A stretch of 64,000 bases of DNA from Ophelia neglecta (Eukaryota), in contig OZ260663.1 in NCBI GenBank assembly GCA_965285935.1, forward strand, positions 82,646,001-82,710,000, in the 5' to 3' direction. The notes beneath the pieces were generated by a model. That model made no database searches. It saw nothing but the letters and a program-made list of their open reading frames with translations, and was not told the origin of the DNA. The translations under genes and the position numbers were made by a program. Within the stretch, counting starts at the first letter, position 1, and the number at the start of each line of letters is the position of its first letter. Positions 34,320 through 63,810 of this stretch are shown piece by piece.

Positions 34320-34559
34320 TGTGCTATCACTATATTCCTAAAAGATATCCAGGTGATTTGCCAGAATCATTAAACAGCCCCTTTACTCCTATGGTGCTTG
34401 AATGATTCTTCAAAGTGCGGGATGTGAGGTACAGATGAAACTCGACAGATTCAATGTCCACTCTGCATTGCTAGTCGGCATGTGTGTTCAGCCTCTTGTC
34501 CACTCCCGTCCTCTGACCGCAGCGATGTGACGTATGTAAAGTGCCTGTCTGTTGATATA

Positions 34560-38862: not shown

Positions 38863-39175
38863 TGAATTAAACAGTGGTCCCATGTGGCGCGATTCAGCGG
38901 GTCGCCTGGGAATTGACGTGTCTCGAGGCGATGTCGTTTTTGTTACATTGTCTGGCAGTATCACTGAGGCTGATGATAGGGAAGCCTTAATGCCGTGCTT
39001 TTAATCGCCATTGATTTTGTGTAATAAGGACCTGCTTGGAGTTAATGACTTTACGAATCAGGTGCAGCAATGACTGTGTAGCCAGCTCGTTATCAGATCG
39101 TCTGCCTCCCACAGTAACAGTGGTTAAAGGTGCGTTAAATTGAGTTCAATGTTCAGCTTTTATCGCAGAAATTAA
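38863..39175. promoter_or_regulatory. Upstream conserved element A (candidate enhancer)
   Basis: Ordered motif blocks shared with 59052-59355. Confidence 0.65.
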
Positions 39176-39523
39176 ATGTGTTGAAAGTGACATGTGCACT
39201 GTTGTACTTTTCAAATAGTCAGTTTATTGACCAAGATAACATCTTTTCCCATCATGTTTTCACGCCAAAGACGTGAATAGTTGATTTAAGATCCAAAAGG
39301 ACATAATAAGTTCTTTAGTACATGTCATTCTGTAGCAGTTATACCTATTTGATAGTTTATTGATCCAGGTATACTGCTATTTACAATTTGTTAAATGACA
39401 ATAAGTTAAATGACCATTTAATGTTAATAAATATATGTAGACCCAAAAGATGCAAACATGTCGAATACTGGATACATTATTTTGTTTTCACTCATATATT
39501 TCGGGACAGAATTTTTTATTTAA

Positions 39524-39595: not shown

Positions 39596-41783
39596 AAGAC
39601 TACAAATGGGGCTTTTTTTTCGTGGGGGAGGGGGGGGGAGCTATTTTTGCAATATATTTGAATAACATATCTGACAAGCGTCACAGCTGTTTACTATAAT
39701 CAACGGTCTTATTCTAATGATTTTATCATCGGCTGCCGCTATGAAATGAAAAAGAACTCGAAGTAAGGCGTGATTTCCTCCGATATCGATTGGTCGCGTG
39801 ACATTAACTAACGTTAGACGTGAGTCGAGTCGGAGGCAGTTGATATGGACTTGACCCATGAGACCTGTGGTGGTACTCGGAGAAAACCACCATGTCAACA
39901 GACTGCTAAGATAGCAGTGAGGTGAAAGAAGACACACGTCTTCCGGGACGACACCGACAAGGAAAGTCAGAAAGTATGGAGATTCTGTGTAAATATTAGA
40001 GTCACAATGTAAGACGGACTGAGGTTTTGTATGATATAGACAAGATTTATCGCAATTATTTAACTTATCTAAAGGCCAACCAGGGTTAAAATAGCATAAT
40101 ACTATCTATAAGTGTTTTTTGCCCTTATATTTCGGACAACTAGTCCTAAATAGTTAGTTATTTTCTTTGGCGCCAAATAAACGTCAGTTGCTACATGCAT
40201 GGTTCAACAAGCCATCTTTGGTGTTAGTAGGGCCTATATGTGTATATGTACATCATTTTAGTTTTTCACACTTTCAATGTATTTTATTTGGTCTCGTTGA
40301 GTTTCGTTAAGATATTAGCGAGGCTGCTATACTTGGTTATAAAAACAGACACCTTTTTGGGGTTAGACAAGACAAGTTATTTTTTTTCTAAATGTACAAT
40401 AGATAGCCTAATAGCCCAAATAGGTCTGCATGCTGTGACTTGGGGGGGGGGGGGGGGGTTGCCCCTGACTAATGCGATTATTAACAGTATTAGGCACTCA
40501 AACGAGACTAAATCAGTTATCAATTCTGCGATATTTATTAGAGTAATGTTTTAAATATGGTGAACTTCTTTGAAAGGGAGGGAATCCTGAAGGGCTACCT
40601 AGAGTAAAAATATTGAGACAAAAACTTATAGGTCTAACACACTACTGATGATACCGTCTGTTATAGGCCTACAATAAAACCAAACTCAGTAATTATGCTT
40701 GTGACAAGCGTTAAACTTTTTTCTCTTTGTAGAAATCAGAAATAAGCACTTCAATGAAACGGCTAATCTGAAATAAATTGAATTGTCCCTTGCTAATGAT
40801 TTCTATAGGGTATCATTTTAAGGGACTATAGGGCGATGTCTCTCCCAGACGACTTATAAGCATGCTCGTTTCTCAATCCCATTCCCCTAACCCTTGAAGC
40901 GCGGCATTTGCGTGAGGATTGTCCTTGTTCAGTGACTCCATGTCGTCTGCCGTAGTGGCCAGACAAATCGCCATCAATATTCTAGGAGTAACAGCCGAGA
41001 ATCTGAGAGGCTAGAAAAAAGGTCGGCCGCGATAAGGCGAGAAATATCGACAATGTAACACCGACCCCCGAGCTATGGGCCGTGAAATTAGACTGCTGTG
41101 GAAGGTGGCTCATAAACTCTCAAACGACTCCCAGAATCGAGTGTGACCGATTTATTGGGGACCAGGGGTACGGCGACAGCATACTGATTAGGCTCTCAGT
41201 CGACTGGCGGTGGAGTACACTGGAAAAATAGTTCTAGGTTTAATTGACAAACTGTTTTATCCCATATAGCCTACCATACATCAGGCACCAGTTCAGGGAA
41301 TAACACTGACTGCAAAGGAAAAAAAAAAGTATTACTCAACTTTGTCACTTTAGAAATATATGAATATTGTTTTTTTTTGCAAACTTGTAATTATTATTTT
41401 TTAACCGAAGTGGGTTTCCAAGCACAAGACTGAGGCGGTTTGGGAGGGGTCGAATTCATTTTGTCGTTCGTCCCCATGAGAGAGCAGACGTCTTTAAAAG
41501 GAGAGCGGCGTTCTAACGCTTCATGTGTCGCTGGCTATTACGATAATCGTCACGTTTGTAGGAATTTCACGCTGTTTTTATCGCTTCATTATAACTATTA
41601 TGCCACCAGATGGCCTATCAGGACGATCTGCTGCTCTGCTCCGCTAGCGAGATGCAAATGAAGAATTAATCACAAGTTGTGATCTTGTCTTGATAATTTT
41701 GCTGATGAAATGTGTGCAAAGCTTGCGAGATAATTAAGCTTCAGTGGTGAAGAAAATCTTTAAAACATAACCATGACCGCTGC

Positions 41784-42744: not shown

Positions 42745-43140
42745 TCACTGCTATCTGGATGTCAGCTATCTACCAGTGACAAAATGTGAATTATTCGCGG
42801 CCTGTTAACATTCTTAACACGGAATCAAAGAGATGAAGATATTTCTTTAGAATGAAAGTGCATGCATAAAACGAAATAAGCACTCCTTCCGTTTTCTGCC
42901 GAGTCGTGATACCAACATGTGACCTTCATCCGGGCAAGTGGTTGATAACCACGGCCTGTATACTTCAGACGAGTAGTGCTATTGTCGGCAGGACGATGCT
43001 TGGGCAGGGCTGGTTGTTTGGATACTCGAGGAGATGGAGTTACCGATCGTGTCAGATAGGTGCAGGCGGGTCAAGAAGGTCCCGCCCGCCGGACGGCAGA
43101 TGGAGTGGCCAGAGATCAACCGGCGATAACTGTGATTATG
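42745..43140. promoter_or_regulatory. Element B, copy upstream of live Tbx20
   Basis: TATCTACCAGTGACAAAATGTGAATTA, CAAGTGGT..ATAAC and CCAGAGATCAA..GATAAC.GTGA shared with the 63.4-63.8k copy. Confidence 0.65.
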
Positions 43141-43314
43141 TCTCCATCCGTCAGGAAATCAAGCGAAAATTTGTTTTGGTGAGCTGGACGAATTGTCAGG
43201 GCTAGGATGGTTTCTTGGCTATCATTCTTAGCATCCGAGTAGTTGTTTATTCCAGATGCATTGGAAAGACAATAACCGTCCCCATTACAAACCGGGTTTA
43301 TATAGAGAAGTAGA

Positions 43315-43880
43315 CCTGATTTCATGTTACTGATCTGACATTTCTGTCATTTTCAACTGACCTGAATTCTCTGCCATGTTTACTAACATGATATTTTCGT
43401 CATGTTTAATGACCAGGGATCATTTTCCTGTTAATTGGCAAGACAATTCTGTCATGTTGACTGACGTGGGGGCGTCTTATATTGACCGACCTGACATTAC
43501 TCAAGTTACCTGACCTACCATCACTGACATGTTTATTGACCTGACATTTCAGCCATGTTTCTTATCTCTGTCATGCTTCCCGACCGGATATCACTGTCAT
43601 GTTTTCTGACCTGCAAACTCTGTCATGTTTACTAACCTTACCTCTCTGTAATGTTTACCGAACTTACATCACTGCCATGTTTTCTGACCTGACATCACAT
43701 AATCTTTACTGACCTGATATCTCTGTCATGTTTACCGACCTGACACCTGTGTCGTATTTACTGACCTGATTTCTCCGTCATGTTTACTGACCTGACTTCT
43801 TTGTCATGTTTACCGACCTGATATCACTGTCATGTTAACCAATCTGACATCTGTGTAGCGTTTTCTGATCTGTTCTGTAA
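43315..43880. repeat. Degenerate minisatellite, unit about 29 bp
   Basis: Many tandem variants of CTGTCATGTTTACTGACCTGACATCT. Confidence 0.9.
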
Positions 43881-44950: not shown

Positions 44951-47877
44951 AAATAGTTTATGGCAGTGTTTCAATGTTGTTACTTGCATCTTTTCTAACA
45001 CTATGCACATCTGTTCTTATCTCTACGGTGCTAGTATCTTCGCGAACATTCATGTAAGTCTATCTTACCAAAACAGACGGGGCTCAAAATTGTCCTTTTC
45101 AAATATATTTGTAGTATACATGTCAGACTACAATAGAAACACCGCAACTGCCAATCATTGGTCTAAATGGTGGTAGATTAGCTGATATATATTCAAAGGG
45201 GAAGTGAAAAGTCAATTCATCTAGATGTAAATAATCTCTATGCCACATTAGACCACCCTGAATGTTACTAGATTCATGTATTTGTTCAACTTTCATAGTG
45301 GTATGACCATCAATAAAACCTTACTAAACACCAACACTCGGATTACACCCAGCCATATTGTAAGAAAATGTACAACGAATTACGCCCCAAGGTGTCAATT
45401 CATCATCCAATTTTTCCTGTTGACTGCTGTGACCTCAGAGTTAGGCAGCGAGGAAACACAATCCCTTACTTAATAGACCCGTCGTATTTCTGTTCTTGTG
45501 GTGATTTGCTATCTTTAACACTTTATGATGTATACTACCTACCGCAGGCAGCATTAAATACAGTTCGTCGAACGACTGCTTTTCTGCAGCCTGTAAAGAG
45601 TAACTTTATTAAAACTCATAAATAGCGAGTGGGCGAACTGTTTTGCAAAGAGAGTTGTTGTTCGCATACCTTTAAGTGAAACATGAAAACCCATTCCGTT
45701 GTTTTTCCTAAACTTTTTAAAACAACTTTACATGATTAAGTAAGGTCGCTGTATAAAAAGGCTCTAAACAGTGTCAGCTTCAATTTTATAGACGAATCAA
45801 AACAGAGAGGCACCTGCAGGTTACAACCATATCTCATTCCAAGAGTGAACTTGGACCCACAAACAAAATGACATGCCGTGTTGTATATGGTTTTCTGTTT
45901 AAGGAAACGCTGTACGGATCTTACCATAAATTGGTGGGTCTGTAGCTGACGGTCCATTACGTATTCGGACTGAATTAATTTATTATGATCGATAAATAGC
46001 TATGCATTGCTGTTATAATATGGCCTGATCCGAGATGAAACTAAACTGGGGCTGTAACAGATATAGGGAAAATCTAGTTTGTGCTTACACTAGTAGAGTT
46101 GCACCAAATTGTGGTGTAATAGTTTTGAACAGGGTGAAGATTTCTACGATCTTAATAACAGTAAGTCAGTTCTATCCCCTGACAATGTGTTAATTGGATG
46201 AACATCATATTTGAAACTAATCGTTCATTTTGTCAAGAGCTTTTTCCATCGTATCTGCCTCACATATTAAATAAGTGTGATGTTATAGGAGGAGAACTAA
46301 AAACGAGTGACACACTTTGTATAAGTAGGGAAGACGGTTCAAAGAATCTCCACTCCCTTTTGTCACACTGCACACAGTTATGCAATAGAGTAAGTGCTGA
46401 AAATCAAATCACAAAACAACGGGAGTAGTTATACGCGGACAAAGCTGATCATTGATCTGAAATAACCATTAAATCAAAAATTCTATTTTCTGATGTGATC
46501 GGTGGTTCGGCTGTTGGTTCCAGTTGATTTCGTACCTATTTAATGGAACGTTCTTGAATAGTGATTTGCCTTTATCTGCCTGGTCTCTGTTCCGGTTTTT
46601 ATTTATTAACCAAGTATAGTCTATAAAGCTAATTATCTCTTATCTTATTGACAACGTCCATTCAATAAAACTCGAAATACCAGTTGTTGCTATTGTTAGA
46701 AGTGTTCACAGGAGGATATATGTAGCTGTAGCTATAGTCATCAAAATCCTTGTTAAGGCAGTTTTCTACTGTCATCGTGGACTGAGTCAATAAAAGAAAG
46801 TACCAATTGTTGTTGTTAAGAATTCAGAGTGTATGCGCATAATCAGACTATCTATTAACATGTTATCGATAAACCAGTGTATCCAAAGGGAAGCTACATT
46901 GGAGTCAATAACAATTTCAAATTATTGGCTGTAACATGGCTGGGTCTATAAAAACGACAAATCACTTGTCGTTAGCTGTGTATATAAATAGTGCGCGCAC
47001 AGTGGGTGCATTTGAAAAAAGGCATGCCAACAGAGAATTGAACCTTTTTAGAAGATATTTAAATTGTTTATTGTATGACAACAACGACACATATTCTAAA
47101 CCTGATCTCTTTATAATGCAAAGTTTCGCCAGCGTAGGGTGGACATCAATGGGTTGCCAACAACCCACTCTCTTCGACATCCCACATTTGTTTGGTCAAT
47201 GTATTATCACTCAGTCGCTTCCGTTTGTTTACCCATAAATATACAGATTTGCTCAAGGGGCTTCTATTTGGTGTTGAATGTTCCTGTGTTTACTTCGGGT
47301 AGCAACTTTTGTTATGTCTGTGACTTCAGTTCATTCTTGTACCCAAGCATTCTGCCGACCTGTTTTATCCAAAAAGAGGGACAAACACATATGTTTCCTT
47401 GAAGGACTATCCCCACTCCCAAAATAACCCTTCTCCGCTCATATGTTGGTCTGGTTTTCTTTCTCAACAAGACTCTTATGTTTCCTGTTATTGAAGAACC
47501 TTATGGACCAATCTTGATTTTTTTGACGTGGGGTGGATGGCATATTTTGTTGAAAACTGGTACTAAAAGTCCCCGTAACCCTAATAAAACAGCTCTGTTA
47601 AGAAAAAACAAGATAACCTCATGATGATAGACAATTTATGGATTTTGCTTATTGGTTGAAGCGTGGAAAATTATAAATGTTGGTGTTTGTGTCTCTTTTG
47701 TGCATGGAACAAAATATTTCCACATATGAAACCACTTTGAATACAAGGATTAAGTATGTTTATATGAATTTAATTTAAACTATCTTTAGCCAATATGTGT
47801 GTGAACGCAGTTCGAGGGAACGGGCAAACTTGCAGAGTTTATAGACTGCCTGGGAACCTCCCCAGAGCCGGCCGAGT

Positions 47878-48290
47878 AAGTGTTATCTTGGTGCCGGAGA
47901 TCAGCTCCAACAGCCAACGATTTACTGCTGTTGTTCCTCCGCTATCTGTGTGTCAGACAACTTATCTACCAGTGAAAAAATGTGAATTACGAGGCCCTTG
48001 TTGGTTATCTTAATCCATGCCCGAGAATATGGCATACTGACTTAAGAAATAAACAGGTCCATAAAGCAGGGTGACAAATACTTCTCATCGTACCAGCTTA
48101 ATGATAAAAAACCTCCGATTAAATTTCAAACAGCGGCCATCAGTGTGTCAGTCTATATATAAGCGTCTTATGTTAAAATATTTATTTTGTATTTTTGAAC
48201 TTTTCAGATTGATAACGAGGTGGTGGGGGGGGGGGGGCGTGGACGGAGGCTGACGGTGGCCAGATATCAATCACTGACACCCGCGTTACG
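47878..48290. promoter_or_regulatory. Element B, second direct copy
   Basis: First about 200 bp roughly 80-85% identical by eye to 63337-63540. Confidence 0.65.
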
Positions 48291-51200
48291 TTTAAGTATT
48301 CTACGAGAGGTCATACCTGAAGGAAGCAGAACAGCGAAGGAGGGTATTATAGGGTAACAAAAGGGCTGGTTGACTGAGATTAGATTCAATTTAAAACAAA
48401 ATATAAATGAGCCATTATAAAAACGGCACCTGATGAAAAGGATTTAGGGAGACATCTGTTAAGTTACTAGTGCACTGTTTCAACTGATATAGTTTCTTGC
48501 AATAGGTGTGTTTAATCGGTAAAACTCCAACTTGAGTATTCTGTTGACTGTTCGAGAGGTGGCAGTTTGTCAATGACAAAACTAGGAAGCTAAAGGAGTC
48601 TGGCGGATAAGGCGCGTGCTGTAAGTCATCACTGTCACTAATCACGATTCCTTGGATATCTCAACATACGTATAAAAATACGGAACTCGAGAAACGTGCA
48701 ACTAATGAAAACACGCTCTGTGGATGGTACTATTGGGATTTGACTTCTTTTACAAATAAAGAACGCACTGTAACCACTCGATGGACTTATAGGTCTCCGT
48801 ACTATGATACCAAAACTGTTTCGAAATCATGGATATTAGGGCACAAGCTAACTTTAGTATAAAGTCCTTGCATCGACAACAATTAAAAAGCACGCTTCAA
48901 AAAATTGAATCACTCATGTGTTGGAGATGCATTAAAGACTTGACAATAAAAAGTGATAACTAAGAAGCGAGTAAAGTCAAGATTAATGTTTTAAAAATCA
49001 AACAAGAGGAAGAGGCGCGTTAAATCACACATACTGTTTTAAAAACTAAAAACAGGCAGGTATCGTGTCCTAAAATATTAGGCCAGCATCATGCTTTTTC
49101 TTGATGGCTGGTGGCTCCTAGTCTCTGATTATCTGGTGATTCCTGATTTCATTTTGGTTGGTGGTGCTTTATAATTTCAGATCGAATTTATTGATTATTC
49201 CTGATAAATGATTGAGATTTGTCTGGCGGGTATCCACTCCCCTTTTTATGGCTCGAATGTTATTACCTCGACATGACCTATAGACATGGGTTCAATTCCT
49301 TTTAGTAAGGATATCAATCTCTGACTTAATGTGACCAACATCTGGCTTGTGCAAACACACGTGATCCAAATGTTTTAAAACTTGACTACCGGTTTTCACC
49401 CCTATTTTAAGTAAATAACTTATCATGTGTGTGGTGTTGTAGACATTTTCAGCTGAACAAAATCTTTTGTTGAACGCCTACGAGAAGAAGTATGCATTGG
49501 CAGATATTTTCGTCCAAACAGCTGGAATCTATATGTTTTGGTAGTCAATTCATGTATTGAGATTCAAGATTTATATGTATATTATATGAATATATTTATG
49601 GCATTTGTTTTGATGGTAAAAGATAATAAACATACTGCAGACAAATGTTCTCAAAATCGACGATTCTTCTATATAGGATGCCTGAACCATATTTAACTGA
49701 GAAATCACAATCATCTTAACACTTTTAGTTAACATTGTACAATGTTGGCTGATTTTCACGATTTTCAAATTAAAATCTTTTCATAATGCGATAACAATCA
49801 GTGTTCAATTTCTGAAGGAATTCTCGGCGGTCTTATTTAAAATGTCGACTATGGTGAGACGCTGAGAAGGCGGGAAGATTCAGGCACACGACGTCCCGGC
49901 AGCCGACAACTGATTACTGATTCCAGGTTTATTACTTGTGACGGCTCATTTTTCTGCTTCCTCCTCAATCTGCATCAACAGAATTATAACCACCAGTGGG
50001 GTCGTAATGAAATTACCGGCCTGTGAAGTTTAGGAACCAAGCGCCAAGATATTCCACGCCATATCGCCGTAATTCGATAATGATCTGTTAATCAAATAAG
50101 GCGAGGAGACCGTTCTTTAAAATGAATTGGATAAAGTGCCTTGTAGAATGTTACCATGGAAAGCTGGTGAAACTTGCTTTTCAGCCGATTTGTGATGGAA
50201 GGGCTGTTAAGAATTGAGATAGGCACGATTTATCATCTGAAAGGAGCCACTGAAGCCGATGAAGCTAAGGGTGTCCGCTAATCATATTAAAGAGAGGCAC
50301 CAGTCGAACAAGTGATCGTTCGTTGCAGCATACAGTGCCAGATGAGATGATCGCACCGCAAAGCCAAGACGTAACTGCGGCTTTTGACTGCGGCTTGAAG
50401 ACGCGATAACCTCGCTGCCTGGCCGCGATAACACCGCGCTTCAGCCATGTGTTAACCACGGGGATGCCGCGATAACGCCGCGGCCTAGCCTTGTCTCTAC
50501 CACGGACTGGATTGTAACGTAATATCGCTCTGCTAGGCCAAGCCACTCAACGAGAAAGTTCCACATTCTTTAGGCCTATATGATGCACCTTTTTTACCTG
50601 CAACGGTCGAAACATTATTTGAGAGCAGACACGACAAAAAATACATCGCCGATTAGTTCATACTCGTTAATTGAGGATCGTAAACTCCGTCAAAGCCATT
50701 ACGACACTAAAATTATGTGCAAAAGCAAATTCAAAAAATATAAATAAGAGTTGATCTAATAGGATAAACGGGTTTCATGTTAGGTTTCAATATGCCAGTG
50801 GTCAAACAAAAGGAGGCTTGCAGTCGTTCAAAGGGCGACTAATCATGATGTTGACAAAGCCATAAGATGGTGTGTCTTCGATGTCTGACACGAGGCTTGT
50901 ACAATATAACATCCTAGGGGATTACAGAAGAACATCATGCCCGCCATTAAAGATGAAATTGGTGTATGGATTTTGTTTTTTACCTTTGCTACAACGGTTG
51001 AAAAGGCATTATGTAATTTAACAGGCTGAGTCGACTATAGTTTTTACTGAGTTTAATTTGCATGTACAATAACCAGGCAAATCAGGCGGAATTCAGAAGT
51101 GGGCCTCAATCCCTTTACCCGGGCGATGGGCGATTGTCAATACGTTCTATGGAAAGTAATAAAAAATGGCTGCTGAATTGTAATTAAATGTATGAACAAT

Positions 51201-52489
51201 TTTGCCCGGGATTTTAATTTTGTAAATTGGTATGGCCGTGATTTTTAATCATGCGATTCTCTTCCTGGAGAGTTAGTTTTCTTTACTGTGTAAATATAAA
51301 GGACATTGTCCTCTGGGTGTCATTTTCTCGCCACCTCTCTAAGCTTGGTCGTCTGTCGTTTTCTGTTGTTATCAGATTGTCATCCATTTAATACCAATCA
51401 TTGGTATGGGTGTCAAAAATCTACAAGAAAATTTCGAGACTTGACATATTATGTGCTGAGCGACTGTGACACACTCAACTTGGCCACATTGTCACCACGT
51501 TCAAACAGCTGAAAGCTACGGCCTCGACATGAAACACCACTATTAGAGGAAAACATTCCTTTACACCGGCAATCGTCACAGTAGTAAATACAAAGGTAAC
51601 TTTGCACATTTCTTAACCAAAAATAACGAACAACACAGCCACTATAATATAAAGATCTTTATCTAATAGCCTTACCGCCATACATATTTATGTTATTGTG
51701 GATGACACAAGTGTCTCATAGCTGGCTCTAGGTGTTATCTAATAGTCCACTAAAACAGCAGACGACAGGATGTGAGAGTCAAACGCCAAGGAATATAAAG
51801 GACGCAGACAATTTATTGTGATGAAACATCCAGGTTTTAACACCTGGGAGGTGACATTTACACTTAATAACAAGGAGTGCTCAATAAAGAGCAAATGGCG
51901 GTTTTTCAAAGCCAAGCCTAGTCCAATGCTATTATTATTTCGTAGCGTGTCGGTTTTCAAGCATCCAAAAAGCTGTCACCCATGCAGTTGGAGACGGGGG
52001 TAACCGGCTGGGAGGGGTGAAGTTTTTGGAGCGGAGGTGGTGTCAGTACCCTCCTTTTATTCCCCTAGTTGCTCCACTAGCTTGGGGTGGGTGTCCATTC
52101 CGAGAGGGAGGTTCGGGGCCCTAGTTTCCTGACCCATTTTTGGCAGTAGACACACTGTCCTCCGATTTTCAGGATTAATAATGAATACCAATGTAAAGGC
52201 CTACTACGCTGATGTCGAGATTTGATGAAGTAAACAGTATCCTATTGAAGCTGCATATCAATGTTCCGCTGAACAATATGCCATTTAACTCTTTGACACA
52301 CGAGACCACTAAGCACTATATATGTATACATATGTATATATATATGTTATATATATTCATGTATACAAAGGCCTTGGCAATGCACATTTATGCAGTTTCT
52401 TGTTTATCATTTATTTCCGATGGATTTCAAAACGGGTGTAGCTTTAACAGGGTTATGTGTTAGAAAATACCTAACAGGTTGAAACATTA

Positions 52490-52890
52490 AATGCCAATTA
52501 CCATTCGTCATTTAGCTCCACCACACCCCGCAGGGCGCAATTACAGCACAACGGTGTCGCTTTCCACTAGAACACGTGCGACTTTACCAATCTATCATAG
52601 CAGTAAAGCTTTCATACACCCTGCTATCAGTTACACCATTTGTTCTCTGTTTGTCACAGATCAGATTTTGTTACTGCAGACGGCGAAGTGACAAAATGGC
52701 GGCAACACTTACTCCCAATGTGCCGCCACCCGGAGGTAGAGATTGCTGACAGGGAACGACGCTCTATCCAAATGTTGACATTCTTTGCGCAACTTTGCAC
52801 CATTTTAAAACCTTTTATGTTGGCATGTGCTGAAAGATATCGACGAGAAGGTGTCGCTCTTTACATCAAACTCAAATATAATGTGACAAG
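52490..52890. promoter_or_regulatory. Paralogous conserved non-coding element I, right copy
   Basis: Inverted partner of 4480-4900; carries T-box-like AGGTGTCGC, TCF-like ACATCAAAC, GATATC and TGACA motifs. Confidence 0.7.
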
Positions 52891-55800
52891 AATTTATTTT
52901 GCCAGTCGGACCATGTCAACGGTTAGTTATTTGCAAATTAACTAGTATTTCGACTATTCGATGCCGTGGCACATGTAAATCGGTTTGCTTTATATAGCCA
53001 ATACTTGTAACACGAGTTAACTGTAAGAAATCCTAAATGTGAACCAGTTAGTGCCTTGCATTATTGGAATCGGGGGTGGGGGAAGGGGGGGGGGGGGGTC
53101 CACTGAGGGGCCGGCGAAATTGTGTGCTTTATAACAGTGGTAGCGGGCTACCATCCGACGACCTCTACAGCCTGTCTGTAGAAACATTTTAAAAACGGGA
53201 GTGTACATCCAACACACAATGCCACATAATCAACCGATTACAGTCTTTACGATCGGGCCGAAATTACTGTCAGACCCACAAATATCAATCCCCGTTTCTC
53301 TAACTGCAAATAAACTCAGATTGATAATAACAAAAATACATATCGACATCACTTGCCCTTTAAAATTTTCCGAAGATGCGAGATGTGAGCACAAAACAAA
53401 CTGGTCAGGATTTAATGTACGACCGAGATGAAATATGTTATGGGTCAGAGGTAAGCCCTGCATAGCAGTTATTCACCAGACACGATCTAACACTAATAGC
53501 TAGTATATGATTTTAATGTCCACTGGAAATTGGTATGAGATGGTTTGTCCCTTGGACACTTTGTCCAACTTTCCTACTACACAGTATTATTCCAGGAATG
53601 CCTGTGACATGAACTCCTCATCCTATGATATCTAATCTGCTGACAGACGACAGAAAGTCGTCTGCACTCGGCCAGATAATTACAGATATGGTTCCGGATT
53701 TATCTTATTTGTTTTCTTATTTTCCCACGATTAGTGGTTAATACAACGTTCCATTGAGAGAGTCTGTCAGCGGGGAATTTTTTTGAGATAGACAGCATAC
53801 AAGAAATGTAACAGGCAGCGGTTACATTTCTATTTCAAAACCGCATTGGCTGTGTTCAACACAACAAAAACATTTGAGTGATAGGCCTACAACGCGAGCA
53901 GTGGTCGTGAGCGCAGCCACGGACGTAAACTTATAAAGATTACTGGCTACGGACGCAATTTGATAGTTGTAGACTTCATGGCAGAGGGCTAAGGCTCAAA
54001 TACCACGCTACATTTTTGCTGTTTTCAATGAGCAATGTTAATTCCAGATATATGTATAATTATAAATCTATTTTGTTCCTCGGAACCAGGACACAATGAA
54101 ATGAGAAAGTTTATATTTATTCGGATATCTTTTGCTCGGCCACAGTGTCGACCCTTTGTACCACTTGTACTTAAGAGAATTGTCAATACATGGGATTCTG
54201 TGAGACATTGCGGGGTGGGGGGGGGGGGGCTTGCCATTTCTGGGGGGGGGGGCTTGCCATTTCTAAAACCAAAATATAGAGTAAGGACATTACTCGGGCT
54301 ACTATTCAGAAAAGGGGTGTCGGTTGTGTGGATACTGGCTTGCCTGCTGCTTTAAAGGGCTTTACGTTGATGACTTTCATACAAAAAGTGAACAAGTAAA
54401 ATTATCAGCCATATATTTTTGTTCACATACTAAAATGCAACATGGTCACTAGTGAAGCATCATTACTTCTCTTATGGTATATTCTCCCAACTTTGCCTGT
54501 GGTTTGGTAAAATATGTGCACACACAATTTGATTTTTCATCTGCCCCTGTGGGTGGAAGTAGTAAATGTTTCCAGTCACTTAGTAGATCAAGTGATGTGT
54601 GTATAGTGATAGAGCATTCTTCACGTGGCACAAATGATCTGAGTAGTTTGCAGACGACCAACTTACACTCGACAACAGGCGATGTAGCGATGATTGCCAG
54701 CCTTACTCACCTCGGCTAAGGAGTTAAGTTCTTACCCCAAGGCATTGGTGAGAAAACTTCTGAAGAAATCAGCGCATCGTCGTAGTTGTTTTTAGACATC
54801 ACCAGCTTCTTGGATTTAGGTTTGTTTGAAATGATCGGCTATGATTTGTGAAGAGGCAGACGAGACCGTTCGGGGCTCACTGTTAATCCACACGTCACAT
54901 GTGATGAGCCTTCAGGTGTTTAATCCCCTTCACCTGGCGGCAGTGAGCGGCAAGAGTAATACGGGATGATGGCTTCGAGTGCACTAGCATGATCCTTAGA
55001 ATATACTTTCGAATTTCGAAAAGTGTGCTCGAATATTTATGTTCAATTAAAAAGTTTCAATCAAGTGTTTGCCTGTGTTTTTAATTCAAGGCTGATAGAT
55101 TTTGTATACCTTTTCTCATTTATTCAATCTTTCAGGGAGGCACTGGAACATACACTGTCCAGATTTTTACACTTCAACGCCTTGACATATTGGCGCCCCA
55201 TATATTGCCAGGCGACATTTTAGAATGCCCTTTCAACCGGAGCAGACGACAATTTCCATACATGTTACTTAGCAGACGACACCAGCGTGACCTAACTGAG
55301 CGACCTCAAGAATTAAATCTCGTAACACAATTAATGCCAGAAACAAAGCTCTCGGCAGTCTGTCCGGTTCAATTTAAAATGACACAGCCCATGATTCGCA
55401 GAGCACCGATGTCATATAGCCGAGTCATTAAGAAGCACTTGATAGCTTCTCTTTAAATTCCTCTACGTAGGTTTTCAAGCCTGGGTTACTTTTCCACAAG
55501 CTGGTCGTGGCCGCAGGATGGCGTGCTGACAAGAGCATGTACACTCCTCCTTGGTGGAGTATCAATCCACCATCCATTTTGTTATGTGAAAGGCCAGAAT
55601 CACAATATTATACATTTTAGCCTGTGATATACTGGTTAAGTTGTCCTTGGTGTAAGTCGCATAGGAAAGGACAAGAATTAGTTTGTACGATGATTGGCAT
55701 TCGCCAGCCTATTTCTGATAAAGGCAGACAAGAGCATACAATAACAGTATGGTTCCGTACTAACTTACTCAGCCGGGTAAAAACATAGACACAACACAGA

Positions 55801-58800
55801 GTTTGGAGAAATTAGCTCTGAGCGGTCCAAAGCAAATAAGATGGCTGACAGTTTCTGTACAAAAAAACAATTACGTGTACAGTAATGTTTTTTAAAGGCA
55901 AATAACTCATTACGTATAATAATTGAATGATCATACGCACTAAAAGAGGACAAAGGCTTTGAGCGATTTTTCCCCTCATCCTAGGGCTATAGGACCCATG
56001 TGAATCTGCTACATACTGATAGAAACTCGATTATTTCTGATTAATGTGTTCAGTCGCAATAAAAGTATGACTGGTTCACTACACAATTATCATTGCAATA
56101 TCGAGGACATTTAACCGACTACCTTGTCCTGGAGGTTATCAGGGCAAATCCATATATGGTCTCACATTAGGGGACAGTATTTCACAGCCCCATTCTTCTC
56201 ATGGGGCCTACAATTGGTATTTATGGTAATTAATAGTTTGCAGGCTGATTTATAATTGCACTTGTCATGCAGTTGGTCCACGTGGTGAGGTCGTTGTTGT
56301 GAAGTACATCAGAAAATATGAAAATTGCTGTTTTTTTACCCTAGCGTAGCGGGTCTGAAATTGCATATCGAATTTTGGACTTGCATATTATTTCAGAATT
56401 ATATATTTATATTAGATTACCAAATGGCTTCATATTCCTGGCCAATGATGATAATACACTCTTGTTTGACCTTTCTGGCCCGACAGATTACATTCACAGT
56501 AGTGTGTTGTGGGTAATAACCTGGTGCTGACATCTGTGGGCAGTAGACTAATCTACAAGCGTTCCTACCTGTAAGAAAACTTATCTATTATTAATCTCAT
56601 TACCAGCTTATATACAGTTTGAAACATGCGACTTATGTGTGTGCGGTGATAGCTGACGGTTCCTGCTAATTTTGGACTAATTTATTGAACTTTACTAGCT
56701 TAATAATCTTGCTGAGTCTCCAAGGTATCCACTCTTTTGTGTGTTTTTTGGGCCCCACCCTTTGCCTAGCTCCCTCTCTCTCCTCTTGAGGAGCTGTGTC
56801 TTCTTGATCATGCTGCGGTTCTTCCCCTTGAAGAACACTCCTTCCACCAAAGCAAAATCCCCTATACTATTTCTGTTCTCTGCTCATTTGACTACTCTAC
56901 CCCCTCGCCCTATGAAAAACCCTTATCAATTTTCCCGAAACTGACTCCCCTTACTACATATGTACCCTGAGCTCGCCCCTTGCTTACTTCCGCCATCTAC
57001 CGGACGTAACCTTTTTAAACTCTAAGCAAGCCTCCCCTACCGCAGCTGTTCTCCACGGCGATTAAATCTCAATCCACTCGTATCCTCTTACTATAATATT
57101 TGCATTGCAAATTAGGTTTCAACAGAAGGCTGTCAGCGGGTGGTGTTAAATTAATGTTTATGTGTTTAGTCTTGAAGCGTAAATAATGAAAACAAATGAC
57201 AGTAGAATAAAAAACCGATTATGCGCCTGGGTGACAAGCCCCCAACACTCCCTTATGTTTAAGTATTATGAAATAACCTTATCGAGAATATTTAATGTTG
57301 GCCAATCTCATTCAAACGTGACTATCTGTGAAGGACTTTAAGCAGATGACATAAGTGTTAATATAATTATAGGCTGACTTGAAAGAATATATTTAAGAAA
57401 TGTTTCAACATATTTGTTTCTGGTGTCATTGGGGTGCCTTTATCACAAAAGTTCCATAAGAAAAATATATCATGTACTTATTTGTTGTTTTGTTCAAAGA
57501 TAATACATTGTCTCGGAGCACTGAGGAGGTGGCGGGGATCCTTTTGTACTGATATAACTTTTTTCATTCGGCCAACTTATAAGGTCATGTGGTCCTCTAC
57601 CGGTTAGTGGCTCGAACGCCAGTAATGTTTTGCCCTGTACGCTTGAAGACCTTATCTTCGGTTTATGTGATTCCATAGTCCCGAGTGACCTGGCTATTCT
57701 GGATGCAGCCCTTTGAACGTGATAAATTATCCCCGGTGGTAATTCGCCATATAGGGCTCCTCTCTCTTAATAATCAGTGTCATCATCCCCGCCCTCGTGG
57801 GGGTCAGGAGCATTAGGGTAGTCTCTCTCCTCGGGGGTGGGGGGGGGGGGGTTGTAGACACTACCTAGCAGTCCTTTTTCTTGAAGCATTGTTGTCTCCG
57901 TTATCAATAATTGGTTCACGAAGACATATAACTCGCATTCTTCTTACGTGATTTGCCCTTTGTACGTATCCACTGATTTCTTGTCGACACACGAGACAAT
58001 GAGTTAAAGTGTAAGTTACGCTGGAGCCACCCCCCGCGCAGTTAGCCCTTTATTCCTCAGTTTGACTTAAGAGGTGATTTTCTTCACGTATTGTGTCCAA
58101 GGCATCACAGCAGGGACGCGCAGACGTGTAGGACATTGTCATTATCTACGGGTTGTTAGTCGGGAGAGGGGTCCCTAGCTTCTAGACAGAGACCCTTAAA
58201 CACCGTAACACTCTCCTGGACATACATCATTGTAGAGAGGCCGTCGACCATATGAACCCATTTTCTGCTCCTGAATACTGATTGATGTATCATAGGTGTT
58301 CTTGTGTCAAACACTTCATTACAGAGTCAATAGATCTGCCCACCACCCACTGCGGGCCGAAAGGCTCTTCACTCCTCTACGGGTGAATTATCGCCTTGAT
58401 TTGTAATTTACATTTATTTCAAATTCCAGCATTTCCAATATAAAATAAAGAAACGACAAACCCTATGCTGTGGCGACGTATGAATGGTTTTGAGGATTTC
58501 CGTAATGTGTGCAGTTATTTTGGTGTTAGAAAGTCTGCACTTGTACCAAAGGTAATAGTCCTTTGCAAATTACGGAAAGGTTGGGGGTGTCTCAGAGCCC
58601 CCTTCCCCCCCCCCCTCTATTTAATTTACCATTATAGTGTACTCTGCCGGTCTCTTGAGTCTGCATGCCTTCTATCGGTAATTTATTGAGACAAACCAAC
58701 AAAAGTTCACACATAAAGTCCTATCATACCTAGAGTGATTATCTTAAAATTCATTTTCAGTATAGATCTGTTTGGGTCATGGACATTCTCACTATGTTAG

Positions 58801-59051
58801 CACCAAGTTATCATTATTTATAGAAAACCATTGCATAAACTCCCCTGTCCAATCGCTTAAATATAATTGTCTACACATTGATGGTTTTGGAGGGAGGGGG
58901 AGGGGGTGGCCTGGGGGGAGGGTTGATGGGTGGGTGCTGGTGTTGGGCGGAGGGGGGGGGGTACACATGGAGTCACAAGAATAATACTTTATAATAGTAA
59001 ATAGATGATAATGGTTCTGGTAAGCATGACAACGACATTGTTTGGAGATAA

Positions 59052-59355
59052 ACTAATCAAACTGTGATCCCCGGCGGCTTGAATTTGTTTCGAGTCTGGA
59101 AAATGTCATGTCTCGAGGCGATGTCGTTCTCTGTAGCAATATCAGTCTAATATCGCCCATGTTGATGATACGGTAGCCGCGTTATCGGTCCACGGCTATT
59201 TATAAAGGGACCTGTGTTGAGTTAATGAGTCTTTGAATCAGGTGTGTTGATGGTAATTTAACCCGGGCATTATCAGGTCGACAGTTTTAAACAGACACGG
59301 TGGTTAAATAGCCGTGAAATTAGAGTTGATGTTCAGTTTTTATCGCTGGAATGAA
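59052..59355. promoter_or_regulatory. Element A, ghost copy
   Basis: TGTCTCGAGGCGATGTCGTT, GGACCTG..GAGTTAATGA, GAATCAGGTG, GTGGTTAAA and ATGTTCAG.TTTTATCGC occur in the same order as at 38.9-39.2k. Confidence 0.65.
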
Positions 59356-60636
59356 ACATGGTACATCGGGATGGCGATCTGACAGCCTCAAAGAAGAATT
59401 GGCAACTCGTCGGTGTAATTACTCCTATATATTATATTCAAATCATGTTAATGGTTTTATCATGCCTTCCAAGCGATCGACAATGAGATAACTGCGAATG
59501 TGACACGTTTTATGTCAAGGATAAATTAGGTTTTTATAATCAAACAAGTCAAACATCCGACTATTGTTCATTTGTTCATCAAAGCATATGTACAGTCTAG
59601 GTAGTAGGACCAACATTTTGAATATCTTCAATGAATAGCTAGGTTACTCCGGCCAATTTTTCAATAAAAGTAACTGAACAACTCATTTCGTACAAAAATC
59701 GCAGACGTAAGGCTATTGGACACCTGGCCGACAATACGGGAGTAGGTCTATGTACGGAGATGGCTTATATAAAGATATATAAATACATTTCTCCTATCAG
59801 GATACATATTGCATATTGTAATTGATAATATCTTTCAGTTGCCCTTTCAAATCCCAATACAGTATTAATTTCGGCAATAATCATAACATTGCATGTACAT
59901 TGAAGCAGCTCGCCCTCATCAAGACAGTGTTGCTATTAACACACGTACACTTGATTGCTGTAGCTATTGATTGATAATCATTCGTATCATATCGACACAC
60001 CATTTTAAAAGAAGATCGTGGTAAAAATGTATGTATCTTCTATATATATATTTTATAGTATACGCTGACTAGAAACTCAAGTGAAATGAATAGGTTTCAA
60101 GGCCAAGCGAAAACTTGAATAGATTGTTGTTGGGGCACAAGTATTGACAACTTAAGTAGAAGCCTTTCCTATAATACCGAGGAATTCCATTTAATATTAT
60201 AAATCTATGCCAAGTCAGGAATAATTACAATGACACACTTCTGAATCAGGCGCGAGTGGAAACTGACAATATGTCAGTGGCAATTCGCCATTTTGTAAAC
60301 AGATTTGCCGAGTGTACGTGTCAAATGATATTTATTGAAGGCCTGATCAGCGTTTGAGCCGGCGAACGGTAAGACGGATTGACAGGTTTGTAAGAAGAGT
60401 GGAAGAAGGGAGATTCTCTGAGACGAGAGGAGTAAGGGGCATTGACATTTGTGGAGGCCATGTGGGGTGGGCTATCGGAGATGTATACAAGTCGAATATA
60501 TAGTCGCGCTGCTTGTTGACAATGTGTACATCCTCAGGAGGGTCAAAACGGTGCCAGAACATCGCTATCTGTTTGAACCGCTTCATAATGATCAAAAGGT
60601 TTGATTTCTCGATGTGGTAATCTCTCATAGAAGCAC

Positions 60637-60755
60637 GGGGTAGGTGAGTGGGTACTGAGCAGGGGTGTGGGTGTAGGCTGGGGGTTGGGGTGGGGTAGGT
60701 GAGTGGGTACTGAGCAGGGGTGTGGGTGTAGGCTGGGGGTTGGGGTAGGGTGGGT
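60637..60755. repeat. G-rich 55-bp tandem duplication (G-quadruplex-prone)
   Basis: GGGGTAGGTGAGTGGGTACTGAGCAGGGGTGTGGGTGTAGGCTGGGGGTTGGGGT twice; explains the Pro-rich ORFs on the minus strand. Confidence 0.9.
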
Positions 60756-63336
60756 GCTGAAGATGGCATATCTATTCCACGATATTAATCGACATTTGAT
60801 TCGACAAGTCATCATAACCATGAGTAGTTCTGCGGGTCTATCCTTTCCAATTGATACCATGGACATAGCTCTCGTTCTTGTCATAAATCCTCTGTGTGCT
60901 ATTGACCGAAAGGAATTATCAAACACAATTCTACATTCCTGACACTTGCTCAACGCCAGTTGAGTATGTGCCAGGCGTTTTTGATATGTGGTTGGTCAGA
61001 CAAATCGGCCTGCATATCTGAAGCAGCCGAATTTCGGCAGACGTATTCTAGGCCTGAAAGACGATGCCGCCATTGCTATCGTTATTCCATATCGGTGTGA
61101 GACGACGCCCCTTGTTTTGACTTTTGTCAGCGAGGGACCACAGCCAATTTAGCGCCTGTCACAGCGACATCGTTCTCAGCACCCAGCCACAGACGAAAGT
61201 CCCTCGTGGGACAGACTGACTTCAGAAAACTAACACAGTATGTCAAATATCGGAGATTTGGGAGGCTGGCGTTAATGCAACTGTCAACGCATGAATATGG
61301 TCTCCTTGTCCTACGGAGTGATTTGATGAAAGTTTTGCAGGCCCGCAGTTGCTCAAATGGCCGTCTTGGGAAAACATCGTCCGACATCTTATTAAGATGG
61401 CGAAAAGGCAATATTCTGATACCCTGCTCACCATCCTGCTCTGTCCTTCGCTCCGCCAAGTTATTTCTTCAGCAAGATAAATGCCCGTGGGAGGATACAT
61501 TCTGGAGCACGTCCGAAAAAGCTAGAATGAAATTTTGAAGACAGGCCTAAAATGGATTCGTCTTTCTCGCATTGCTTGCATTGATGAAAGTATCATTGCG
61601 AGCAATGTCCGAGGTGGTACTACACTAGATAATTAACCCCTGAACAGGACTTACAAACTGCAGAAAGTAGAAAGACAGTCGTTTTATATACACACGAACT
61701 AATATCGATTCAAGCGCGTGCAATAATAGGAAGTGATGAATGGGAAATGGCAAAGTCAAGTCAGTTGACCTCTAGAGTGGTGTGATGAACTGGTGCCCAA
61801 GATATTTGGTCACCTTAGATACCTCATCTATTTCTCACTCCCCATGGGGAAATATTGTATTAGGCTATCATATTATCATGCGTGCTATTTTATATCTCTA
61901 AAAGTGCGCGAAGTTGGGCAAGGGCGTAACACCCTTTTTATTTTGCATTAAGAATATGTTCTTCGGTCACAATTAATCAATATAGGGGCTGGTTTGATAG
62001 AAAAATATCCCTATTTTCCCACGCTACACTACTTTCTCACCTAACTAACACTGCCTAAGCATGGCTGAGGCCGCAAGCGAACCTTGCGAAAAAGTGCGCG
62101 AAGTTAGGCGGTCTTCCCCTATCACATAATGATATTAAGATTCCTAAGCATACTGTATGGTATATGGCACCCACCTTTGCCCTTTTTATGCCTATTTTAA
62201 GGTTGTTTTAAGACTGTCCAGTGCTTGTTTATTAATCGAGTGACCGTAAAGGCGTTACGTATGGGGCGGGTGGTAGGTGGGGTCCTATTTCATGCAGGCA
62301 TCTGTCCACATAGAGGAGTGCAGACAACCTCTCCTTATGGTCACAGCACGCCCGGCCAGGGTTCTTGTTCTAAGCCGCCTATCAGGTCCATTTAAACACC
62401 TTCACGCGTCCTGAAAGAGTGTGCATTTAGCCTAAAAGTAGCAGATGGCCCTTCCTCTAACGAGCTTCACTGGGCAGGCTGCAGACGACCACTGATGTTG
62501 TGATAGTACATGGGAATAGCATAACTAGTACCGTGATGGCATGGCTCGATGGCGTGTAGCAAATAGCGTCTGTTCGAGCGTAACTGATTAATTACCAGTG
62601 CTGATCTGAGACAGGGAGCCTAAATGAAGTGAAGCGAAAACATCGGAAAATAGCCTTCTTATAGGGCACGATCGGGGTGGAGTTACACAACGGCACTATT
62701 TAATGAGCAATTAGACAACATTCCCGTCAGCCCGGTGCTCATCACAGATATCCTGGTTTTCTGCCACAATAATATCAGGACCAAGTTTGCCTTTAGTCCT
62801 CTGTAATATAAATAAGTCTGTTCTTATATTTGTTGAATTATTGACTGAACGTTTTCTCTACTAACACTACTCACTACGATTCGAATACAAACTGAAGAAA
62901 ACAACAAGACAAAAAAGTTCTTCATTAGCACCCGACACGAGAAGACAAGAACCGTGTCCACGTGGTCAGCGTGAGGATAATCCTGCATAAGAAGTATCAC
63001 ACAAGTCTGTGTGTCAAATTCTGTTTAACGGAGCCTTTAATCCACCAGGCATACTTGGCGAAGATTTATACGTTGAAAATGTTATGTGGAATGAAATCCG
63101 CTTTATTTTTTTAAACCATTCAGCAAGACTAGTCTTTCCCTCGATAAAAGCTTTAGGTTAGTGATAACTCCTGGAAAAATAAGATTTATAGAACCGGTAA
63201 GAAATAAAACAACGCTTAAAAAGTCGTTTTTCAATTGAAAATAGTTTCACCTTTATCGCGCTGGGGATGTTATGGGGAGATAGAAGTCTGATTTGTCGGA
63301 AGTCGTCTGCATATTGTACAAATGTCGGCTGAGGAA

Positions 63337-63810
63337 GTGATAACTTGGTGCCGGAGAGCAGCTCCAAGAGACTACGATTTACTGCTGTTGTTCCTCCGCT
63401 ATCTGGGTGTCAGAAGACTTATCTACCAGTGACAAAATGTGAATTACGAGGCCCTTGTTACTTATCTTAACCCGAGCCCGAGAAGATAGCATTCTGACTC
63501 CAGAAATAAACAGCCACATAAAGCAGAGTGACAAATTTCATCCATCGTCTGCTCCTGGTCCCATCGTGTCGGCTTGATCAGGCCAAGTGGTAATAACACA
63601 CCGAAGAGCGGCCATAAAGCAGACAGAATGCTCTGGGAGTCTGGCACCAAGACTGCGGATGTTGTAAAGGGATCTTCCATGGTAAATAACGCCCGTGCAT
63701 CGGGGGAAAATGGGAGAGCGACTTCTAGCAGCCTTGCCCCAGCCGATATCAGATGAAATGACCAGAGATCAATCACAGATAACCGTGACCAAGCGGCAAT
63801 CAATCAAGGA
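63337..63810. promoter_or_regulatory. Element B, third direct copy
   Basis: Aligns with 42.7k, 47.9k and, inverted, 12.5-12.9k. Confidence 0.65.

Follow-up and report, generated by a model that had tools for sequence, protein, structure and literature searches.

The Tbx20 cluster and its intact genes

The DNA analysed here (the window) is a stretch of 64,000 nucleotides of Ophelia neglecta. Coordinates without a prefix are window positions, and C5 denotes the contig that carries the window. C5 carries a Tbx20 cluster of about 300 kb. Its intact members are three Tbx20-type genes (A, B and C), of which only gene B is placed inside the window (Table 1), and the cluster also contains at least eight units that are degenerate. 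The cluster is built through repeated tandem and inverted segmental duplication. G3 is the sole degenerate unit that keeps an exon (exon 6, with 24 of 25 residues identical), and further copies of the distal upstream module R are present at C5 82.474-82.479 Mb.

The Tbx20 exons were searched one at a time, each as a separate query. Exons 2-6 of gene B matched the T-box family (PF00907) and covered profile positions 2-182. Among the 120 hits listed, 'T-box protein 20' (P0041, P0086 and P0103) was the only subfamily name. Exon 1 of the live genes encodes an eh1-like motif (FSIASLI, within ...AFSIASLIA...), a stretch that we take to resemble the N-terminus of TBX20. The exon-8 ORF gave just sub-threshold, unrelated matches in the protein atlas search. 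As judged from their sequence, the live genes A, B and C are Tbx20-type.

Table 1. Positions of the genes, conserved blocks and other features in the window.
Feature	Position	Strand	Remarks
Ghost unit G5	2153-4872	+	orientation opposite to G1; E1 2153-2305, Y 3391-3634, X 4483-4872; exons none
Live Tbx20-type gene B	26134-34337	-	eight exon ORFs
Exon ORFs of gene B	34011-34337, 32704-33042, 29357-29569, 29072-29284, 28698-28901, 28245-28322, 27491-27670, 26134-26547	-	
E2 of gene B	29939-30206	-	intron 2
E1 of gene B	33317-33421	-	intron 1
U1 of gene B	38844-39179	-	4.5 kb upstream of exon 1
R of gene B	42747-43148	-	upstream of gene B
Second R copy	47867-48100		
Block Z of G1	49818-50236	-	3'-flank element, 3' end of G1; 88% identity to G2, 97% over 49900-50139
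Block X of G1	52482-52949	-	ghost-family-specific: in G1, G2, G5 and G6, absent from live genes; substitution pattern non-coding
Block Y of G1	53591-53851	-	ghost-family-specific: in G1, G2, G5 and G6
Block E2 of G1	54516-54940	-	homologous to the element in intron 2 of A, B and C
Collapsed junction of G1	54941-55088	-	A/T-rich spacer of about 150 bp; 2.5-3 kb including exon 2 in live genes
Block E1 of G1	55089-55462	-	homologous to the element in intron 1 of A, B and C; also in G4 and G5
Block V of G1	57062-57168	-	common to G1 and G2; weak copy near G4
Block W of G1	58011-58358	-	G1 and G2 only; 145-bp twin-identical run at 58208-58352
Block U1 of G1	58998-59424	-	homologue of U1 upstream of gene B and of units GH and H'
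Block T of G1	60214-60437	-	G1 and G2 only
Block S of G1	61104-61371	-	common to G1 and G2; copies in GH and H'
Insertion of a young, high-copy interspersed repeat in G1	61900-62122	.	copies of 97% identity on 7 or more contigs; outside the conserved array
Block Q of G1	62222-62308	-	common to G1 and G2; two more cluster copies
Block R of G1	63231-63808	-	distal upstream module, marker of the 5' end in every unit; 10 or more copies, none outside the cluster

The exon-less unit G1 and its inverted twin

The interval 49818-63808 (G1) is very probably the remnant of a duplicated Tbx20 gene unit without exons. About 28% of its length is kept as 12 non-coding blocks, discrete, of about 90-580 bp each and of one polarity. 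Those with counterparts in the live gene follow its order: R (distal upstream), U1 (upstream), E1 (intron 1), E2 (intron 2) and Z (3' flank). The order R-S-U1-E1-E2-Z recurs in other units of the cluster (nhmmer), and a copy of Z is located 3.6 kb downstream of gene C (C5:82757723-82757990; nhmmer). The ordinary pseudogene pattern is reversed in G1, as had been proposed. Intronic, upstream and 3'-flank blocks stand in gene order and the exons are absent.

Six same-strand collinear pairs between gene B and G1 had been put forward in the preliminary description. The pairs were tested using blastn and local alignment against shuffled sequences, and four were significant: 29943-30207 with 54672-54939 (72-77% identity, z 42), 33325-33425 with 55127-55220 (72-75%, z 22), 38863-39175 with 59052-59355 (64-68%, z 31) and 42745-43140 with 63337-63810 (63-78%, z 28). 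The other two proved spurious. The pair 36388-36591 and 56076-56464 gave a z of 1.7, with the reverse complement scoring at least as well, and in the pair 40956-41200 and 60993-61180 only 25 bp aligned, at 80% identity (z 5.3; blastn E 7).

The reported collapse of the exon 2 interval was reproduced, with 3.1 kb between the intronic blocks in the live gene and about 150 bp in the ghost. In G1 and G2, E2 and E1 stand 150-260 bp apart, versus 2.5-3 kb in A, B and C. The exon-less junction was bridged by independent contigs from three DNA runs (one sample). The interval of exon 1 and the promoter had been given as about 0.9 kb in the ghost; this value was based on the false pair 36388-36591 and 56076-56464, and the true E1 and U1 anchors give 5.4 kb in the live gene versus 3.5 kb in the ghost.

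G2 (C5:82529420-82550715) is the mirror (inverted) twin of G1 and lies about 150 kb away. The collinearity survives proper alignment: 12 blocks are strictly collinear between the twins, at 76-90% identity. The spacers are saturated, and those that have similar lengths in the two twins align like shuffled sequences (z -0.9 to 5.5). G2 has the same exon-less layout as G1, including the collapsed E2-E1 junction. Since both twins are without every exon and share this junction, the loss of the exons predates the duplication that separated them.

Rates of change differ between the twins, E2 and Y having evolved faster in G1 and X and S faster in G2. Lineage-specific changes in E2 were counted at 20:6 (G1:G2), and the GC-box of the conserved E2 core is missing from the E2 of G1. 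There are thus hints of relaxed constraint on this copy of E2.

Gene conversion, probable constraint and non-coding nature of the blocks

The alignments clearly point to gene conversion that is active in the cluster and ongoing between the twins. G1 and G2 share near-perfect tracts in R (228 bp), W (145 bp) and U1 (77 bp), set in sequence of 72-85% identity. In the R tract (63313-63540) the twins differ by a single mismatch, and this tract is just 59-86% identical in other R copies. Among the live genes, exons 3-4 have a dS of 0.02-0.08 in all three and exons 6 and 8 one of 0-0.07 in A and C; the unconverted exon 5 of A, B and C reaches 1.2-1.7. Because gene conversion is active, similarity alone is no proof of selection. 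The higher GC content of the blocks (0.45 versus 0.39-0.41) fits regulatory modules or GC-biased conversion alike.

The E2 core comprises about 180 bp, with 78 columns invariant in six copies, including those in the introns of the three live genes. E2 as a whole is 63-84% identical among seven copies and contains no recent conversion tract. In run X2, 3-6 heterozygous differences were counted in 1377 bp of blocks versus 31-34 in 3179 bp of spacer (p 0.001-0.04), a 2-4-fold lower heterozygosity of the blocks in a count from a single sample with 40 of the 75 differences listed. The randomised spacers, the cores common to old paralogues and the lower block heterozygosity are moderate evidence for constraint. 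The blocks appear to be kept by selection, gene conversion or both, and some constraint on them is probable. In five contigs from distant species (L027-L031), E1, E2 and other blocks were not found by blastn or nhmmer, and the matches were to exons only (exon 2: 78-85% nucleotide and 58-83% amino acid identity). The missing blocks are uninformative because these species are too distant.

The strongest alternative, which we consider unlikely, is that G1 is a dead and functionless duplicate in which the blocks are islands upheld by recurrent gene conversion, without selection. Islands of this kind could sustain themselves and leave blocks recognisable without function. The near-perfect tracts of 145-228 bp in blocks of 72-85% identity would be accounted for, with the R tract unconserved in other R copies, as would the patchy homogenisation of exons (3-4 in A, B and C; 6 and 8 in A and C). 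The higher block GC is as expected of GC-biased conversion, and the E2 of G1 is accelerated and has lost a core motif. However, the same islands persist across far older paralogues, as the seven copies of E2 with no recent tract illustrate, and conversion cannot explain this because it requires prior similarity. It also leaves the lower heterozygosity of blocks versus spacers unexplained, and W, T and V have no donor besides the twin 150 kb away.

A coding reading of the blocks was rejected: they show no period-3 substitutions, their indels are not multiples of 3 and they have no block-wide shared ORF. A structured RNA or a miRNA host was rejected as well. Rfam gave no match over the whole window, and RNAalifold, applied to six E2 copies (215 columns), returned -15 and -17 kcal/mol and a covariation term that was positive and penalising, so that neither a conserved fold nor covariation was found in E2. 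A very unlikely reading is that the old duplicate gave rise to a transcribed gene for a non-coding RNA (e.g. a lncRNA), with the blocks as its exons or promoter. The blocks are indeed discrete, ordered and of single polarity, and the upstream modules that were kept could include a promoter. Against these points stand the intronic position of E1 and E2 in three live genes and the RNA results for Rfam and E2; moreover, splice sites that frame the blocks in a consistent way were not noticed in the alignments, and exon 1 and its immediate surroundings are unrecognisable in the ghost.

The earlier statement that the ghost holds no T-box ORF was borne out. PF00907 was absent from it in all six frames, and no Pfam family was found in its ten longest ORFs. 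Searches with tblastn (word size 2, E ≤ 5) returned no exon remnant, and hence no intact spliceable exon, in G1, G2, GH, H', G4, G5 or G6. A candidate exon-1 remnant at the expected position in G2 (C5:82538754-82538930; 31% over 62 residues, E 0.12) was non-significant, had no counterpart in G1 and was discarded. We give practically no credit to the view that the ghost is a live, very divergent Tbx20 paralogue with undetected exons: all that favours it is that the flanking and intronic blocks have kept their order, whereas the six-frame, tblastn and Pfam searches were empty, an A/T-rich spacer of 150 bp takes the place of exon 2 and the blocks are without a coding substitution pattern.

E2, E1, U1 and R are present in 5-10 copies genome-wide, all on C5 82.47-82.77 Mb, and the orientation of the block copies follows the duplication arms of the cluster. 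All matches to the 14-kb ghost lie in the same interval, except those of the young 223-bp repeat and of two short pieces with few copies. Dispersal over many chromosomes was seen for 61900-62122 only and for none of the 12 blocks. The notion that the matches are interspersed repeats or chance, with no ghost gene at all, is refuted in practice: several blocks do number 3-10 copies within the window or close to it, the 223-bp insertion is truly high-copy and two of the six pairs first proposed are at chance level, but the copies of every real block are confined to one 300-kb cluster, their orientation tracks its arms, the 12 blocks are collinear with the twin and the alignments reach z 22-42.

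Origin and possible role of the retained blocks

The explanation that fits best as a whole, and that we judge somewhat probable, is a degenerate, exon-less Tbx20 unit whose cis-regulatory blocks are retained by selection and conversion. A whole Tbx20 unit would have been duplicated and all eight of its exons then physically deleted. The exon-less unit would next have been duplicated in inverted orientation to give G1 and G2, the spacers being randomised afterwards as the blocks stayed 76-90% identical. The earlier picture of a dead duplicate beside the surviving Tbx20 is right as to the exon-less, collinear partial copy and wrong as to the survivors, which are three live genes and not one.

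From this arrangement we infer selection, an enhancer activity and a target gene. The blocks would most likely be DNA-level cis-regulatory modules (enhancers or silencers), preserved by purifying selection with the help of conversion between copies. Selection would keep them because they would still contribute to the expression of neighbouring live Tbx20 genes, and gene B, with its promoter 15-30 kb off, would be the likeliest target. The blocks may serve a live Tbx20 gene as enhancers, at slightly less than an even chance, and a shadow-enhancer role is plausible.

A broader proposal, tentative and somewhat unlikely, is that exon-less copies have been selected as 'regulatory-only paralogues'. 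It would involve at least three separate exon losses (in the G1/G2 ancestor, in the GH/H' ancestor and in G4), each leaving the same cassette of enhancers in order, R-U1-E1-E2-Z. The twins, degenerating complementarily, would then represent an enhancer-only subfunctionalisation that feeds the three live genes.

The concept of shadow or distributed enhancers comes from Drosophila, where such elements are defined by activity. The cluster resembles them in having related modules at differing distances from the same or paralogous promoters, which could give redundant input. It differs in that its modules are known from their sequence and that they would have originated, contrary to the common account, by whole-gene duplication followed by exon loss.

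In zebrafish, the hoxDb cluster has been reduced to a microRNA. There too the protein-coding part of a duplicated developmental locus has gone and a non-coding remnant, functional in hoxDb, stays at the syntenic place. The remnant of hoxDb is a known miRNA, whereas G1 consists of multiple blocks in which no RNA family or hairpin was found. One teleost Hox cluster has been secondarily lost (PMC2080641).

Vertebrate conserved non-coding elements (CNEs) have been partitioned between duplicates after whole-genome duplication (PMC1896008). Like these duplicated elements (dCNEs), the G1 blocks are non-coding and collinear in paralogous loci of a developmental transcription factor, and the surrounding DNA has diverged past alignment. 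Unlike them, they arose in an invertebrate by local tandem or inverted segmental duplication, and several copies are entirely without a gene. CNEs are usually defined by cross-species conservation, whereas the blocks described here are known from paralogous copies within one genome.

Drosophila midline and H15 form a tandem Tbx20 pair in one regulatory neighbourhood, in which Wg activates and Dpp/BMP represses (PMC4736030). Tbx20-family genes are likewise duplicated in tandem in one neighbourhood here, but both Drosophila genes are intact, and this cluster has, besides three intact genes and an inverted duplication, eight or more units that are exon-less or fragmentary. The E2 core contains a putative BMP/Smad-like composite (a GC-box, five bases and two GTCT), in our reading one mismatch from the textbook motif. 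Unprocessed pseudogenes share with G1 an origin by segmental gene duplication and subsequent loss of function, but they are recognised by a disabled coding sequence; none is found in G1, which consists of intronic and flanking elements only.

If gene conversion alone upholds the blocks, the locus is a caution that conserved-looking paralogous non-coding islands can lack function. The locus also brings together candidate regulatory modules of Tbx20 in a compact form, and because each module occurs naturally in 2-10 diverged copies, they amount to a mutational series ready for use in reporters. If the blocks are functional, the locus would be a natural experiment on the fate of enhancers once their gene dies. 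Redundant or 'shadow' input could then arise by way of gene duplication with exon loss, and over several rounds of duplication the regulatory DNA could outlast the coding DNA.

Ghost units around the live Tbx20-type genes

The exon-less Tbx20 unit of the window (the ghost, G1) is real, and the phenomenon is wider than the preliminary description had it. The region analysed comprised 320 kb (C5:82490001-82810000, the window and its flanks; C5 is contig OZ260663.1). The Pfam T-box model, run over all six reading frames, picked out three multi-exon T-box genes (A, B and C) on this contig within 270 kb. The exons of gene B were each searched singly; its eight exon ORFs all have counterparts in A and C. 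PF00907 is present on exons 2-6 of gene B, the product of its exon 1 contains FSIASLI, an eh1-like motif, and 'T-box protein 20' was the sole subfamily name among the database matches listed for its exon-2 piece. In another organism (ENA sample ERZ25073285), two contigs, L029 and L030, share one Tbx20 exon-2 product and show 93-94% identity across ~10 kb. The pair represents either haplotigs or, in that species as well, a recent duplication of Tbx20.

Six block pairs had been proposed between gene B and G1. Four were recovered as same-strand and collinear by window self-blastn and by local alignment against shuffles: the intron-2 element E2 (z 42), the intron-1 element E1 (z 22), the upstream block U1 (z 31) and the distal upstream block R (z 28). 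The pair 36388-36591/56076-56464 scored at chance level (z 1.7), and 40956-41200/60993-61180 was a 25-bp match (z 5.3). The proposed collapse around exon 2 was borne out, the E2-E1 distance being 3.1 kb in gene B and ~150 bp in G1. The exon-1 interval is also smaller (5.4 to 3.5 kb with true anchors), the figure first quoted having leaned on a false pair. The description of the ghost as a 'reverse pseudogene' holds. The exon-less E2-E1 junction of G1 was spanned by contigs of three sequencing runs and is thus not an assembly artefact. In run X1, contig joints and loose ends occurred at poly-G sites (~54230 and ~57833); low-complexity G runs probably tangled the assembly graph there.

Self-blastn of the 320 kb and nhmmer with block profiles revealed a recurring unit order, R-S-U1-(exon 1)-E1-(exon 2)-E2-(exons 3-8)-Z, where Z is the 3'-flank element; live gene C, too, is followed downstream by a Z copy, at a distance of 3.6 kb. 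No gene B exon was found in any ghost unit save exon 6 in G3 (tblastn, all exons, E<=5, word size 2). That copy carries 24 of 25 residues as in gene B, the 255 bp around it match gene C at 96% identity, and G3 is without exons 3-5, 7 and 8. The other long ORFs of the 320 kb are transposon debris.

Features of the Tbx20 cluster (positions without prefix are those of the window)
Feature	Position	Orientation	Content
Gene A	C5 ~82498-82509 kb (C5:82498245-82508985)	+	Pfam T-box, six-frame
Gene B	26134-34337	-	Pfam T-box, six-frame
Gene C	C5 ~82761.6-82769.3 kb (C5:82761632-82769305)	-	Pfam T-box, six-frame
G1	49818-63808		ghost, twelve blocks
G2	C5:82529420-82550715	inverted relative to G1	twin of G1, twelve blocks
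GH	82514.5-82528.8 kb		R, S, U1, E1, E2, Z
H'	82710.3-82718.9 kb	mirror of GH
G3	C5:82594489-82596175		diverged E2, exon-6 copy ~0.8 kb on, then intron-6 block
G4	82724.2-82725.1 kb		E1 and intron-1 element, 84% identical to gene A
G5	2153-4872	opposite	E1, Y, X; exon-less
G6	82743.1-82744.8 kb	mirror of G5
Z and R copies	11779-11982, 12510-12898	inverted	beside G5
Local inverted repeats	C5:82558293-82590572, C5:82617807-82643755		between left and right cluster halves; palindrome-like arms, 69-92% identical
E2 core	54822-54940, 30090-30206
ORF	L012:2485-3108		Pif1 helicase 2B domain, Helitron-like
ORF	L025:4885-5469		reverse-transcriptase fragment
Minisatellite	43564-43856		between R copies upstream of gene B; 26-bp units, ~11 copies, 74% matches; higher-order periods 78, 129, 155
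Perfect duplication	54219-54264		inside ghost; 23 bp, contains poly-G
Tandem duplication	60637-60756		inside ghost; G-rich, 55 bp, 2.2 copies, 96% matches
Interspersed repeat	61900-62122		inside ghost; young, short, ~223 bp

Inverted twins and the order of events

G1 and G2 are collinear through the blocks Z, X, Y, E2, E1, V, W, U1, T, S, Q and R. Together these cover 3.9 kb of the 14 kb, at 76-90% identity between the twins. Spacer lengths are similar in the two, but spacer alignments score no higher than those of shuffles (z -0.9 to 5.5), so the twins have been apart long enough for DNA without constraint to become random. In G2, E2 and E1 lie ~260 bp apart and exon 2 is absent; the exon-less architecture therefore predates the separation of the twins. 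The stretch 82499-82551 kb, ordered [A intron 1 - GH - G2], has its mirror image, [G4 - H' - G1], at 82696-82725 kb. Two ghosts therefore predate this inverted duplication, and the right-hand copy of the A-like gene lost its exons later. The left part of the window (G5 with the Z and R copies) also has a mirror counterpart, at C5:82726.9-82744.8 kb, identity reaching 95% over 296 bp.

Relative-rate counts (G1:G2) were balanced overall (157:140). G1 was faster in E2 (20:6) and Y (24:10), and G2 in X (22:42) and S (7:18). Either complementary decay or noise over eight tests could account for this.

Constraint, gene conversion and other accounts of the blocks

The conserved blocks beside randomised spacers favour constraint. 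In the E2 core, 78 columns are the same in all six copies, among them those in the introns of A, B and C, genes whose unconverted exon 5 has dS >1; 8 of the 12 blocks recur in older units (nhmmer). Among the differences listed for run X2 (one sample), heterozygous ones numbered 3-6 in 1377 bp of blocks versus 31-34 in 3179 bp of spacer, that is, 2-4 times rarer in blocks (one-sided binomial p 0.001-0.04).

Gene conversion is a serious alternative for part of the block similarity, and it is active in the cluster. A, B and C are all under purifying selection (exon 5 dN 0.04-0.05 versus dS 1.2-1.7) and show mosaic concerted evolution: dS is 0.02-0.08 in exons 3-4, 0.6-1.1 in exon 1 and saturated in exon 5, and A and C scarcely differ in exons 6 and 8. 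Perfect runs between G1 and G2 are also far above the expected length (W, 145 bp; U1, 77 bp); R matches over 228 bp with one mismatch, and Z is 97% identical over 240 bp. The remaining R copies share the R run at no more than 59-86% identity, which makes it a recent G1-G2 conversion tract rather than an ultraconserved core. The GC content (0.45 in blocks versus 0.39-0.41 in spacers) fits constraint and conversion alike.

The blocks are neither known nor evidently structured RNA: no Rfam match was found within the window, and RNAalifold on six E2 copies (215 columns) gave -15 and -17 kcal/mol for the two strands, and covariation lent no support. E1 and E2 have survived in units without exons to splice; a role in pre-mRNA processing is unlikely, and any function would more likely be exerted at the DNA level. 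Coding blocks were rejected, since substitutions between the twins lack a period of three and most indels have lengths not divisible by three; no ORF crosses any block in both twins, and no Pfam family was found in the ten longest ghost ORFs.

High-copy repeats, a check set beforehand, do not explain the blocks, because their genome copies (E2, 6; E1, 5; R, 10; U1, 5) are confined to the cluster (C5, 82.474-82.768 Mb). With the entire 14-kb ghost as query, all twelve blocks matched inside the cluster only; outside it, one high-copy element (the interspersed repeat) and two small low-copy pieces were matched. Copies of this repeat, 94-97% identical, occur on C1, C2, C5, C7, C8 and C9 among 39 scored of 357 first-look candidates, and older ~80% copies also on C15 among the matches listed.

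Candidate regulatory role

The zebrafish hoxDb cluster is a duplicated locus without coding genes whose non-coding remnant was kept. Such emptied loci, the shadow-enhancer idea and duplicated CNEs around paralogous developmental genes (PMC1896008) are among the closest patterns to the Tbx20 ghosts; one teleost Hox cluster has been lost (PMC2080641). Unlike in those systems, the origin here is local tandem and inverted duplication, and exon loss was repeated with the same ordered cassette retained. Those three are defined by cross-species and functional evidence, whereas the Tbx20 ghosts are described from sequence.

On the gene strand, the E2 core consists of a GC-box, five bases and two tandem GTCT boxes, with two CACCTG E-boxes and a CCAAT-type ATTGG further downstream; the GC-box is mutated only in the G1 copy. 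As a motif reading, the core may be a BMP/Smad-like composite, one mismatch off the textbook motif, and offers a lead on mechanism. Tbx20-family genes in flies are BMP/Dpp-regulated (PMC4736030).

G1 lies 15-30 kb upstream of the gene B promoter and ~52 kb past the 3' end of gene C. That selection keeps its blocks as enhancers with a shadow-enhancer role is plausible, unproven and close to an even chance. On the most likely reading, the blocks of the exon-less paralogous units would be cis-regulatory modules that serve the live Tbx20 genes.
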